DNA of 64,000 nt from Salpingoeca rosetta (Eukaryota; Protista; Choanoflagellata): contig JAWQFM010000020.1 of assembly GCA_033442325.1 (NCBI GenBank), positions 969,863-1,033,862 on the forward strand, in the 5' to 3' direction. A model generated the notes under the pieces. It saw only the letters and a program-made list of their open reading frames with translations. It was not told where the DNA came from and searched no databases. The stretch's first letter is position 1. Every line of letters starts with the position of its first letter. A program made the position numbers and the translations under genes. Positions 29,417 through 37,579 of this stretch are shown one piece after another.

Positions 29417-32400
29417 ATGAGCCACACAGGTGAGGGTGTTTGAGTGCTTGGTTGATCATACGACAGGAGCAGCCGTGCTCTTCACCGCATCCTATCCATT
29501 TCCGTCCCGCGTCATTCGCTGCAAACGCCTGCTGATTGACTGCCATTCGCATGCAGGCGCTCACCATTCCATGTCACAACCATCATCATGCCTGTGCGTT
29601 CCCTTGCAGTGCGTTCTGGGGTTACGGTGCGTGTTCCCGCGACAACGGCCAACATGGGGCCAGGCTACGACAGTCTCGGCATGGCCCTCGATCTCTGGAA
29701 CGAGCTCACCGTCGAATACGCCAGCATGTGTGTGTGTGTGTGTGTGTGTGTGTGTTTGCGCATGCCTGATGAGAAGGGTCGTCAACTCGCTTGCTTGACC
29801 TCCCTGTGGCTGCTCTCACAATACCTTCTGTCTCTCTTTTTTCACGCACATACACACATGTCAGGTTCAGCATCCACATCCAGGGCGAAGGCGCTGACGT
29901 GCTGCCTCGCAACGAAGACAACTTTGTCGTCAAAGGTGCGCAGACATGACTCTACGCGTGTATGTGAAGGGAGTGTGCTTAGGCATGGCTGAGCCAAGCT
30001 CCATTTCACTGAACAATGTATCGTTAACCCACCCCACCTCACAAACACTCTCTTCGATCCCCCCCCCTTCCTCCTCAACAGGCGTGCAGCTGGCGTTTGA
30101 GCGCGCTGGCAAACCAATGCCAACGCTGGCGTTCTTCTGCAAGAATGAGATCCCCTTTGGCAGTGGACTCGGCAGCTCAAGTGCAGGCATCATCTCCGGC
30201 ATTCTCGCCGGCCTTGTCCTCTCTGGCCAGCAAGTCAAGGTCTGTTGACGCGCGCGCGCGCGCGTGTGTGTGTGTGTGTGGATGTGTGTGTGTGTGTGTG
30301 TGTGTGTGTGGGTGTGTGTGTGGGTGTGCGATTGCAGTGGCTGCCAGCTGCTGTCCTGCCTACTCATGTGACACGTGCTGATGACTGCGTGTACCAGGTG
30401 AAGGATGGCGAAGAACTGCTGCAGATGGCTGCATCCATTGAGGGACACGTGGACAACATCGCGCCGTGCATTTACGGCAACCTGCAGGTCTCGCTGCTAA
30501 AGCTGGCGGTGTTGTTGTTGTTGTTGTTGTTGTTGTTGTTGTTGTTGTTGTTGTTGTTGTTGTTGTTGTTGTTGTTGTTGTTGTTGTTGTTGTTCTTGCT
30601 GCTGCTGTTATTGTTGTTGTTGTTGTTGTTGTTGTTGTTGTTGTTGTTGTTGTTGTTCTTGCTGCTGCTGTTATTGTTGTTGTTGTTGCTGCTGTTATTG
30701 TTGTTGTTGCTGCTTCATCCGTCTTGATACCTTTATTCAATTACGCCCGAAGTGGACACATTCTTCATCAAGCTTTGTTGTGCGAACGCTCTCCACTTGC
30801 ATGTTTCTCCACCACCACGCTTCACTCATCTGTACCACGCACTTTGCACCACCACTGCCACCTTCACCACCGCTGCCACGTACTTCCTTTCGTCTCCACC
30901 CAAGATTGGGTTCCACACGGGCGAGCGCTGGCAGACGCAGGAGATTGCTGTGCCGTCATCGCTGCAGTGTGTTGTCCTCACACCAAACACGCCCATGAAC
31001 ACCAAGGAAGCAAGGGCCATGCTCAAGTCAGAGGTATGCTTGAGTGTGTGTGTGTGTATGTGCGTGTGTGTGTGCGTGTTTGTATGTGTTCTTCCATGCG
31101 CTTGTGTGTGTATGGCGATGTGAGCATTTGTTCATGTTGTCCCACAACCTCGCTTGTGTCCTCCCTCCTACACTGCTTGTCCTCTCTCGCATGTTGATCA
31201 CCACCCCCCTTCCACCCTCGTGTCTCTGTGCAGGTTCCACGAGACGATGCCATCTTCAACATTGCCCGCACTGCACTCCTTGTCCGCGCATTTCAAACCG
31301 GCGATTTGGACTCTCTGCGCCACGGTCCGTCGCCCACAAATGCACACGCGTCCTGTGCATGTGTGTGTGTGTGTTGTACGTGTGTGTTGTGTGTGCGTGC
31401 GTGTGCTGTGTGTGTGCTGTGTGTGTGTGTTGTGCGTGCGTGTTGTGCGATTGTGTGTGTGTTGTGTGTGTATGTGTGTGTTGTGCGTGTGTGTTTGCCA
31501 AGTGTTGCCGAGCAAGGCGGTGAGTGGGAGTGGTCGTGTCTGCACGCCTGTGTGGCGCCAAGTACGTCAGCACTGACCACATTGCGTGCATCTCTGCTCC
31601 ATCAGCGACGGAGGACAAGCTTCACCAGCCGGTTCGCGGTTCAGACAAAGTGCTGCCAGCCCTCTTCCCAGTCATCAAGGCAGCACTGGACGCTGGTGCA
31701 AAAGGTGCGATGCATGTGCTGTGCACAAAGAGATGTTTGCTCTGCTCCACATGAGAGAGAGAATGTGTGTGTGTGTGCGTGTTCGTGTGCGCGCTGTACA
31801 TTCTTGTCGCCGTATCTACGATCACACACATTCATCCAGTACACACACGCATACACACGCATACACACGCATACACACGCATACACACGCATACACGCCT
31901 TGCAGGCGCGTTTCTGTCTGGTGCTGGGTCGTCCATCCTGGCCATCACGACGGGCGCCCGCGGCGAAGTGGCGGTGCAGGACGCGAGCGAGCGGTTCGAC
32001 GCTGCTGTTGCCGCAGCAATGACCGCTGCTGCCGAAGCCTGCGGGGTGCAAGGCCGCATCACCATCACCCGGGTGAGTACTGCGTGTGTGTGTGTGTGCT
32101 TGTTTGTTTGTTTGTTTGTTTGTTTGTTTGTTTGCTTTTGTGCGTGTGTGTGTGTGTGTTTGTTTGTTTGCTTGTTTGTTTGTCTGTTTGTTTGTTTGTT
32201 TGTTTGTTTGCTTTTGTGTGTGCTTTGACGTCTGTGATTCCACCTGTGGACAAGATGCACTGCTTGTGTCGACGACAATAGCAATTGCATCAGTATGGGC
32301 ATCCAAGCACACAATTCACAATACGATGCACATGCGACGTACTTGTTCTTGCCACAACAGCCAACACCGCTCGGTGCGCATGTTGTGGCGATTCGGGAGA

Positions 32401-35400: not shown

Positions 35401-37579
35401 TGTGTGTGTGTGTGTGTGTTTTGGTGCGTTATTGTTTTTTTTTGTTTGTTTTTTGTGTGCGTGCACATGTATGGGCGTTGCTCTGCTTCTCTGTGCCTAG
35501 CAGATTTCATCGTCTCTTCACTGTGTTCTGATCCTGCCCCATCATGACGTGAATGCTATCGACATTGCGACAGCCCCGGCAATGGACATTGTTGTTCCAA
35601 GCAACTTTGAGCGCTTCCTCTACTTCCTTATGGACAACAATCCTCACAAAACGAAAGGTGTGTGTGTGTGTGTGTTTGGGTGTTTGTTGTAAGCTGGTTC
35701 ATATGTGGGCGTATGTGGGCGTATGTGCGCTCCTTGTTGAGCGTGCGTATGTGCGCGCGAATAGCCACACACCTGCTTTCTTCTCACTGACCATCCCATG
35801 TTACCCTACTTACAATATACTCGCGTGTCCACAGCGCTGATGAAACGCATCAAGTCCAGTGGAACGCTTGATTTGGGCAAGAACAAGGTGTTGTTGTTGT
35901 TGTTGTTGTTGTTGTTGTTGTTGTTGTTGTTGTTGTTGTTGTTGTTGTTGTTGTTGTTGTTGTTGTTGTTGCAAGCGGTGGTTGGAGACGTAGGGAAGAC
36001 GTAATGAGTGATTCAACGTTTCGTGCTCCTCGGGCCGTGTCTTGTGCTTTGTGCTTCGTGTTGTGGACATTGTGCTGCATCTAATGCTGCTGTGTTGTGT
36101 ACGACATCTCTAACGACCCAGGATGAGTTGTACAAGATTGTTGACTCCTTTTTTGATGCCGGCCGTGCTTCCGACGAAGACATCAAGGGTATTCAACCCA
36201 TGCGATCACGCGCACGTGCACACACGTGCACACGTATAGGCGTACACGTTCAAATACATGCACGTATGCATTTGCGTGGCTGGAGTACCTTTTTCTGTCA
36301 AGTGCTTCCTCGCCCTTGTTGCTCACAACACTTTTGTGTCGATGTTGTTGTTTTCAGCTGCCATCTGGCGTTATCGCAAGCTTTACAACTACCTTCCCTG
36401 TCCACACACGGCCACAGCCCTCCACACAATGCAGTGAGTGTCCTTGTGCACTGTGTGTGTGTGTGTGGAATGGTGGCTGTTGCCTTGTTACAGCCTCGGC
36501 TCCTGTGCCAGACGTATTGCATGCTCCTGTCTACTTGCGCTCACACACACACACACACATACACACACACACACACACACACATACACACACACACACAC
36601 ACACAAACAAACACACAAACAAACACGCTCTCTCTCTCAATCTCTCATACGCCCACTGCATGCCCATTTCAGGCTTGTGCGCGGTGACGGGGAGGATCTG
36701 GCCGGCGTTCCTGCGTCCCATTTTGTGTGCTTGGCCACAGCGCATCCGGGCAAGTTCCGCGAGACGGACGCGCCAACAGATGTGCCGCCACCACTGCCAC
36801 CTCAGCTCAAGGGTACGCGCTTGGTTGGTGCGGGTGTGCGTGTTGGCGGGGGAGGGAACGATGACGTGTGGCTGTGAGGGGTGGGTTGCTGCGTGTGCTT
36901 GGGTTGTCGTTGCTGCCGTTGCTTTTGCTGCTGCTATTGTGGCATCGTTGAATTGCCATGTGAGAGCGTGATGGCTGGACTGTTCCTTCTCCCCCCAACA
37001 ATACTGGATACTGCGCTGATTACGTTCAACGCTTGCCTGCACGCTTGCTTGCACGCTTGCGCCCACCTGCACTCTTTGCGTGCCGGCAGGGCTGCACCTG
37101 AAACCGAAGCGGTGCGCACACATCGGCAACGACCTGACCGAACTCAAGGACTTCATGGACACCACGCTTGCCGAGCGCGAGCAAGCCAAGGATGTTGCTG
37201 GTGAGACAATGCTGTGCACTTGTGTGTATTGTGTGTATTGTTTGTGTGTGTGAGCGTGTTTGTATGCATGTGTGTCTGTGTGGTTGTCTCTGCACGTGTG
37301 TGGTTGTCTCTGCATGTGTGTGCTTGTCTCTGCACGTGTCTATGTGGACACCTGCTATCCAACAAACGCTGTCTCGTTGTCCTGCATACATTTACTCTTT
37401 CCTCTTTCGCTCACGCACACACTCTCACACACGCTCACACTCTCACTCTTTCTGCAGGCACGTCTTCGTGCATGTGGTGCGCTCAGATGTGCTGTGGACG
37501 CTGGGATTTGGTTGCTGCGGCTGGCGTTGGCGCTGCGGTTGCCATTGCAAGCCTGCACCTCCTCAACAGGCGCACGTGA
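29417..37579 (+). CDS. Bifunctional homoserine kinase (ThrB, GHMP family) - threonine synthase (ThrC/THR4-type, PLP) fusion with C-terminal hydrophobic tail
   Basis: HSK: [57 protein letters not shown]. Exon 32361-32466 reads PTPLGAHVV...RYVSTR in one frame. TS: [36 protein letters not shown] (PLP Lys), [51 protein letters not shown]. Confidence 0.9.
30509..30710 (+). repeat. Intronic (TTG)n trinucleotide repeat
   Basis: Long gttgttgtt run shortly after a donor site in the HSK-TS gene; a similar run lies at ~35889-35971. Confidence 0.9.

Follow-up and report, generated by a model that had tools for sequence, protein, structure and literature searches.

In Escherichia coli, the classical fused enzyme of the pathway from aspartate to threonine is ThrA, which is aspartokinase I-homoserine dehydrogenase I. 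The last two steps of this pathway are catalysed in Saccharomyces cerevisiae by Thr1, a homoserine kinase (HSK), and Thr4, a threonine synthase (TS) with a solved structure (1KL7), and Thr1 and Thr4 are separate proteins. We found that the choanoflagellate Salpingoeca rosetta encodes enzymes for the same two reactions in one chain. The gene lies on the forward strand at positions 29417-37579 of a 64,000-nucleotide stretch, hereafter the window (contig JAWQFM010000020.1 of assembly GCA_033442325.1, positions 969,863 to 1,033,862); coordinates given below without a contig name are those of the window. We regard the gene as a real single-polypeptide HSK-TS fusion, with a probability of roughly 0.88. 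Choanoflagellates kept the threonine pathway, which animals lost (PMC6040629), and the S. rosetta gene is the choanoflagellate route for its last two steps.

The gene model was put together manually, with all three forward reading frames of the window as its basis. It comprises 26 exons with 2649 coding bases and encodes 882 amino acids (aa) with no internal stop codon; all introns are of the GT-AG type. The parts of the gene, with the evidence by which each was recognised, are as follows.

29417-29429, 29610-29727, 29865-29935, 30082-30239, 30398-30487, 30905-31033, 31234-31324, 31606-31704, 31906-32072, plus strand: exons 1-9
32361-32466, 32667-32743, 32906-33085, 33294-33443, 33647-33716, 33948-34024, 34229-34306, 34498-34581, 34802-34928, plus strand: exons 10-18
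35168-35278, 35574-35657, 35835-35887, 36122-36188, 36358-36433, 36673-36812, 37090-37200, 37458-37579, plus strand: exons 19-26
29417..32072, plus strand: HSK (a GHMP kinase), aa 1-312, exons 1-9 (TIGR00191, Pfam, 6CYZ)
32361..32466, plus strand: junction exon 10, aa 313-348 (translation, splice phases, AlphaFold2 (AF2), 14-protein alignment)
32667..37200, plus strand: TS of the Thr4 type, aa 348-843, exons 11-25 (TIGR00260, Pfam, 1KL7)
37458..37579, plus strand: exon 26, aa 843-882, with a spacer, a hydrophobic helix (aa 860-878), NRRT and the stop codon; predicted tail anchor
32295..32297, plus strand: in-frame ATG within intron 9, 66 bases before 32361 (frame 1, open over 32238-32486)

The span 29417-37579 had been given by a first-pass annotation of the letters as that of an HSK-TS fusion, and it proved correct, with the addition that the last exon (37458-37579) codes for a tail that is hydrophobic and belongs to neither enzyme. 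The hand-built model is identical over 882/882 residues to a public S. rosetta protein (P0096) in a local comparison. This protein is named 'threonine synthase [Salpingoeca rosetta]' at NCBI and 'Homoserine kinase' in UniRef, and it carries precomputed Pfam assignments to GHMP_N, GHMP_C, Thr_synth_N, PALP and THR4_C. A search of 1.84 billion representative proteins with exon 12, the longest exon (60 aa), led to another 882-aa protein (P0011), matched at residues 371-429, and to several fragments in which the C-terminus of HSK and the N-terminus of TS are both present; P0011 used in turn as the query of a word search led to P0096.

Both halves score above the equivalog cut-offs of NCBIfam. The HSK half matches TIGR00191 (thrB) over aa 9-295 with 222.8 bits against a cut-off of 168.25, and the TS half matches TIGR00260 (thrC) over aa 397-789 with 262.8 bits against a cut-off of 167.1. 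The Pfam domains follow one another in the expected order: GHMP_kinases_N (aa 63-147) and GHMP_kinases_C (aa 210-287) in the HSK half, followed by Thr_synth_N (aa 339-420, E 9e-27) and PALP (aa 428-676) in the TS half. With single exons as Pfam queries, GHMP_kinases_N was recovered from exon 4 (profile positions 12-52) and exon 5 (profile positions 56-86); single exons are short, and the blank Pfam results for several of them and an empty PDB search with exon 9 are uninformative. The best solved relative of the HSK half is the homoserine kinase 6CYZ (E 1.5e-41). The TS half aligns with yeast threonine synthase 1KL7 over 450 residues (E 3e-124), the Thr_synth_N domain included, the alignment ending at about residue 790 of the fusion, and its FKD motif with the lysine that binds pyridoxal phosphate (PLP) is aligned with FHGPTYAFKD of 1KL7. 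The HSK half holds an N-terminal motif of the PATxANxGPGxD type as well as the GHMP phosphate-binding loop. Across 21 fusion proteins, including that of S. rosetta, the invariant residues are GLGSSSA (96-102), EGHxDN (135-140) and R234 in the HSK half, and FKD (459-461, with the PLP lysine K460), SGDTG (497-501), NSIN..R (576-582) and GNFG (616-619) in the TS half. Both halves look catalytically competent, and we infer HSK and TS activities from these residues. The idea of a single HSK-TS polypeptide is therefore upheld, the equivalog cut-offs being passed and both catalytic motif sets being intact, with G96-A102 and K460 invariant.

The junction between the two enzymes lies within one exon. 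As had been read from the letters, the end of HSK and the start of TS share one open frame in exon 10 (32361-32466), whose translation contains neither a stop nor a methionine, and the introns on its two sides are compatible in phase. Exon 9 ends in phase 0 (GRITITR, followed by the donor GTGAGT), and exon 10 ends with GAC G before the donor GTGGGC, exon 11 supplying the AG that completes a glutamate codon. The junction exon, flanked by CAACAG and GTGGGC, joins in phase to the exons at 31906-32072 and 32667-32743. In the AF2 model, the last HSK strand consists of residues 319-327 (GAHVVAIRE) and the first TS strand of residues 340-342 (YVS, within RYVSTR); these strands and the linker of eight low-pLDDT residues between them (328-335) are all encoded by the junction exon. 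An HSK terminating at exon 9 would be without its last strand, because strand 319-327 lies in exon 10. The Thr_synth_N profile is matched at positions 10-33 in exon 11 and 34-79 in exon 12, contiguously across the intron, when single exons are searched; positions 1-9 therefore fall in the junction exon. Neither end of this exon is able to stand alone. An alignment of 14 fusion proteins showed the linker to be variable in length and sequence and both of its flanks to be conserved. In most fusion proteins a methionine directly precedes RY(R/V)STR, and it is apparently the relic start codon of a formerly separate TS; at this site (S. rosetta aa 336-338, about 32430-32438) a proline is found in S. 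rosetta and in P0097, the protein of its nearest relative.

Choanoflagellates of both orders carry the fusion in the HSK-to-TS order. Transcript assemblies contain complete fused open reading frames (ORFs; TransDecoder 'type:complete') from Stephanoeca diplocostata (P0011, 882 aa), Diaphanoeca grandis (P0094, 896 aa), Microstomoeca roanoka (P0095, 882 aa), Choanoeca flexa (P0098, 904 aa) and Salpingoeca urceolata (P0100, 878 aa), and a partial one from Bicosta minor. HSK-to-TS fusions are also present in 'Incisomonas marina' transcripts, in Mastigella eilhardi and in many metagenomic proteins of 785-1159 aa, and two ESM Atlas clusters of fusions have 103 and 93 members. In Balamuthia mandrillaris the order is reversed: an 855-aa protein (P0119) has TS at 7-482, followed by GHMP_N at 570-654. 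The Mastigella and Balamuthia fusions look like independent events, as judged from their divergent HSK halves and their positions outside the main fusion clade. The first-pass annotation had offered a lineage-specific fusion as one possible origin. This suggestion holds at a broad level only, since the fusion is common to both choanoflagellate orders, is shared with an environmental and viral sister clade and arises again in Amoebozoa. The same annotation had remarked that novelty would be lowered if the fusion were widespread in other protists, and widespread it is. The Incisomonas proteins (P0101, P0212-P0215), labelled as stramenopile, nest with acanthoecid-like sequences in both half-trees (see below) and carry the tail anchor; contamination of the transcriptome or a recent transfer is possible. 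A different TS fusion was observed in Capsaspora owczarzaki, whose 741-aa TS (P0170) is joined at its C-terminus to a class I S-adenosylmethionine methyltransferase (Methyltransf_25/12/23, about 546-710).

Separate trees of the two halves, made as quick IQ-TREE runs under LG+C20 PMSF, are unrooted, and their deep nodes are unsupported (81-84). The HSK and TS trees agree in uniting two clades with an SH-aLRT of 99: clade A, consisting of all choanoflagellates, 'Incisomonas' and a Bicosta-like metagenomic protein, and clade B, consisting of environmental sequences. Mastigella and Balamuthia stand outside clade A+B on long branches, and the stand-alone genes of Capsaspora, Corallochytrium, Ichthyophonus, Creolimax, Sphaeroforma and fungi branch outside it as well. 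The HSK half is nearest to stand-alone eukaryotic HSKs (Capsaspora, Corallochytrium, ichthyosporeans and oomycetes). The TS half is nearest to yeast Thr4 and groups with eukaryotic enzymes of the Thr4 type, away from the bacterial sequences. When clade A was forced to group with the stand-alone opisthokont genes, without clade B, the cost was 28.8 log-likelihood units (lnL) for HSK, with a p-value of 0.041 in the approximately unbiased (AU) test, and 22.3 lnL for TS (p-AU 0.079); these AU results are marginal, the groups having been named after the tree was seen. One clade B contig (L011) is intron-poor and eukaryotic, and the neighbours of the fused gene include coatomer gamma and ornithine decarboxylase.

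Two freshwater IMG/VR contigs belonging to clade B, IMGVR_UViG_3300027712_000016 (195,055 bp, with the gene at L009:6172-8529) and IMGVR_UViG_3300023174_000355 (37,960 bp), both of ~40% GC, encode an intronless 785-aa HSK-TS fusion (P0106), the second copy being 88% identical. Both halves of this fusion branch within clade B. Around the gene lie small ORFs without assignment, homing endonucleases of the GIY-YIG and HNH types, a DNA methylase and a cap guanine-N2 methyltransferase. The setting resembles that of a large DNA virus that infects a eukaryote and carries a threonine-synthesis gene.

Choanoflagellates could have taken over an existing fusion, either from some other eukaryote or from a large DNA virus of clade B, ousting the ancestral separate holozoan genes. 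We hold such a history possible but tentative. It would explain why clade A is sister to clade B in both half-trees, and not to the stand-alone genes of Capsaspora, ichthyosporeans or fungi, why a grouping of clade A with opisthokont genes is penalised in both AU comparisons, and why clade B holds the two viral contigs. However, those comparisons are marginal and made on groups chosen from the tree itself, the deep nodes lack support, the direction in an unrooted tree may be out of choanoflagellates as well as into them, and the tail anchor is confined to clade A. On present sequences, a single origin of clades A and B is favoured, and the fusion is probably common to choanoflagellates and their sister clade of environmental eukaryotes and viruses by descent or by transfer. 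Its distribution places the fusion before the split between Craspedida and Acanthoecida, making it at least as old as their last common ancestor.

In the working that we propose for the fusion, the N-terminal ThrB-type GHMP kinase (aa about 4-327) would convert homoserine and ATP into O-phospho-L-homoserine, and the Thr4-type PLP synthase (aa about 338-843), past a flexible linker of ~8 residues, would convert the O-phosphohomoserine into threonine. A C-terminal helix (aa about 858-880), followed by NRRT, would tether the protein to an organelle membrane on the cytosolic side. The benefit of the fusion would lie in a 1:1 stoichiometry and in nearby active sites, phosphohomoserine being consumed at once. 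When homoserine dehydrogenase, HSK and TS were artificially co-localised in E. coli, the time of threonine production fell by more than half (PMC7998396), and a benefit of proximity is plausible for this reason. At least three fusions of the same two enzymes (that of clade A+B, that of Mastigella and the reversed one of Balamuthia) argue that their coupling has been selected. The AF2 model, made with a 21-sequence alignment, has a mean pLDDT of 85.6 and a pTM of 0.64, and pLDDT falls below 50 only at 328-335 and 845-857.

The predicted anchor lies beyond residue 843, where threonine synthases end; the S. rosetta protein goes on with a spacer, a hydrophobic segment and NRRT. Residues 860-878 have the highest Kyte-Doolittle 19-residue mean in the protein (2.11) and end four residues from the C-terminus, and AF2 modelled a helix at 857-881 after the low-confidence spacer 845-857. 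In the model the HSK fold begins as early as residue 4, and the N-terminus has no signal sequence. The protein thus combines one hydrophobic helix within ~30 residues of the C-terminus with the absence of an N-terminal signal, which is the signature of tail-anchored proteins. A similar tail, followed by basic residues (KKHA, KLLQR, KRTGLL, KK), is present in 9/10 clade A proteins with a complete C-terminus; none of the clade B proteins has it, and the Mastigella and Balamuthia fusions are likewise without a tail. By sequence and model, the C-terminal helix most likely serves as a tail anchor that holds the protein to an organelle membrane from the cytosolic side. Tail anchors that are moderately hydrophobic, rich in Ala and Gly and flanked by basic residues are more typical of the mitochondrial outer membrane or of peroxisomes than of the endoplasmic reticulum, and we infer, weakly, one of the former two as the target. 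A 265-aa TS fragment in the representative library (P0025) carries a hydrophobic segment at its N-terminus (MTSHSVGLVAGFAAASLSTVLLLRVLKRNH), directly before Thr_synth_N. This segment is possibly an N-terminal membrane anchor, a mirror image of the C-terminal one of S. rosetta.

Several points weigh against one tethered, bifunctional protein. The pTM of 0.64 goes with no confident interface between the domains, and nothing supports a physical channel. The proposed anchoring is derived solely from hydrophobicity, position and conservation, and Choanoeca flexa isoform i6, although a clade A protein, has no tail. For S. rosetta, the case for a single transcript is assembled from the annotated model, from word-share arithmetic and from orthologues. 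A search with the junction-spanning fragment (P0096:230-470) among proteins from assembled public runs gave no S. rosetta match at high identity, and fused fragments of other organisms were found by the same search. Finally, the ATG at 32295 in intron 9, which is in frame and open into exon 10, provides a possible start for a separate TS in principle, and a minor TS-only transcript may begin there.

From the last of these points it might be argued that the locus makes two proteins, with an internal promoter in intron 9 giving TS from ATG 32295, or an HSK-only transcript, or both, and that the fusion is mainly an artefact of annotation. ATG 32295 is the only route found here to a separate TS start, and the methionine just before RY(R/V)STR in most orthologues would be a possible internal start in those proteins. 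We consider this reading improbable. S. rosetta has proline, not methionine, before RYVSTR. Without exon 10, HSK would lose its last strand and be truncated, and if intron 9 were retained, the chain would run on for ~50 junk residues to a stop. Fused ORFs, five of them complete and that of Bicosta minor partial, occur in the assembled transcripts of relatives. Of the 31-letter words sampled from 31600-33450, a share of 0.33-0.35 was present in eight runs of two studies that are probably RNA; the expected share is 0.329 for exons 8-13 without introns and 0.287 if the junction exon is missing too, so that the observed share fits all six exons spliced together. The word share and the fused ORFs of relatives are indirect support for a single transcript in S. 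rosetta.

Formation of the fusion in bacteria from a thrB-thrC operon, followed by horizontal gene transfer (HGT) to choanoflagellates, is very improbable, and the bacterial-operon origin entertained at first is not supported, because both halves have their nearest relatives among eukaryotes (all of the nearest HSKs, and Thr4-type enzymes for TS) and no fused gene was found among the best 80 loci when the junction region was compared with 185,579 prokaryotic species genomes. Those 80 loci are ordinary TS genes, the inspected ones being separate ORFs (L067, L043). Long tblastn spans in Chlorobiaceae were taken up as a candidate fusion and rejected: thrB and thrC are there adjacent but separate ORFs in the same frame. 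Such adjacent cistrons, thrB then thrC (L067), are what a bacterial origin would start from. The two fusion clusters of the ESM Atlas are labelled 'Bacteria 93%', with very few members of known phylum; the labels 'Bacteria, Bacillota' are based on ~15 members and disagree with the eukaryotic neighbours on L011, the sole clade B contig with informative neighbours, coatomer gamma among them. The threonine-pathway genes of S. rosetta have been listed as HGT candidates, and they failed that study's own filter (PMC7971027).

We also examined the rest of the genome. In a six-frame search of the S. rosetta genome (55.4 Mb, 68 contigs) with TIGR00191 and TIGR00260, for which the counts of matches are lower bounds, both profiles matched this locus, and the fused gene is the only thrB/thrC locus found. 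One further GHMP-motif match, on contig C3, is unrelated. A PALP match on contig C24 was considered as a second TS and rejected, being a threonine ammonia-lyase. This enzyme is encoded in C24:327788-331279 by a minus-strand ORF (811-2685, 624 aa) that matches TIGR01127 with an E of 1e-66 over the first half of the profile only, and it has an N-terminal extension of 215 residues with no family match. It would draw on the threonine that the fusion makes, on the way to isoleucine. At the exon level, the genome also has matches to aspartate kinase, homoserine dehydrogenase and a MetX-type homoserine O-acetyltransferase. Methionine is probably made via O-acetylhomoserine, to judge from these genes, and phosphohomoserine is seemingly committed to threonine alone because the MetX homoserine acetyltransferase is present.

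Nearly every intron of the fused gene carries a long microsatellite, (TG)n and (TTTG)n being among them. There is a (TTG)n tract of ~200 bases in intron 5 (30500-30700), a (GT)n tract of ~90 bases in intron 17 (34690-34780) and a (TTG)n tract of ~85 bases running from the donor of intron 21 (35888-35972). Part of intron 7 (31355-31395) is TG-rich.

The fused protein and its set of domains are already public in NCBI, UniRef/UniProt, EukProt and the ESM Atlas. No published description of an HSK-TS fusion was found in the full-text collection searched, most subscription journals being outside its coverage. What we describe is thus two textbook enzymes in an architecture that is in databases yet, as far as we found, undescribed, and the conserved tail anchor seems to be its sole element apparently unremarked so far. 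A natural HSK-TS fusion that arose at least three times among eukaryotes makes a clean Rosetta-stone case. It also offers an object for testing the importance of proximity or channelling for phosphohomoserine, a matter to which metabolic engineers have applied artificial scaffolds (PMC7998396). If the anchor is real, a membrane-tethered enzyme of amino-acid biosynthesis would be an unusual case, and S. rosetta can be transfected. In the boldest version of this account, which we consider doubtful, choanoflagellates carry out the last two threonine steps with a membrane-tethered bifunctional enzyme, perhaps at the mitochondrial outer membrane, whose gene has moved between eukaryotes via large DNA viruses. 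If true, the sister group of animals would run a step in the making of an essential amino acid on an acquired, anchored metabolon.

The closest systems are the other choanoflagellate fusions in EukProt. They have the same order and junction as the S. rosetta protein, with 878-904 aa and 57-75% identity, and they share its tail anchor, except for the Choanoeca flexa isoform. The linker of Diaphanoeca is ~20 residues longer, and most of these fusions have methionine before RY(R/V)STR where S. rosetta has proline. Balamuthia P0119 and Mastigella eilhardi P0217 (836 aa) likewise hold the same two enzymes in one chain, but their HSK halves are only 28-33% identical to that of S. rosetta and branch far from clade A+B. 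Yeast 1KL7 is without the hydrophobic C-terminal tail, whereas the S. rosetta fusion has both the linker of ~8 residues and the tail. Like E. coli ThrA, the S. rosetta fusion unites two steps of the pathway from aspartate to threonine in one chain. ThrA, however, combines the non-consecutive steps 1 and 3 and is allosteric, whereas the S. rosetta fusion combines the last two, consecutive steps, with no regulatory domain seen.

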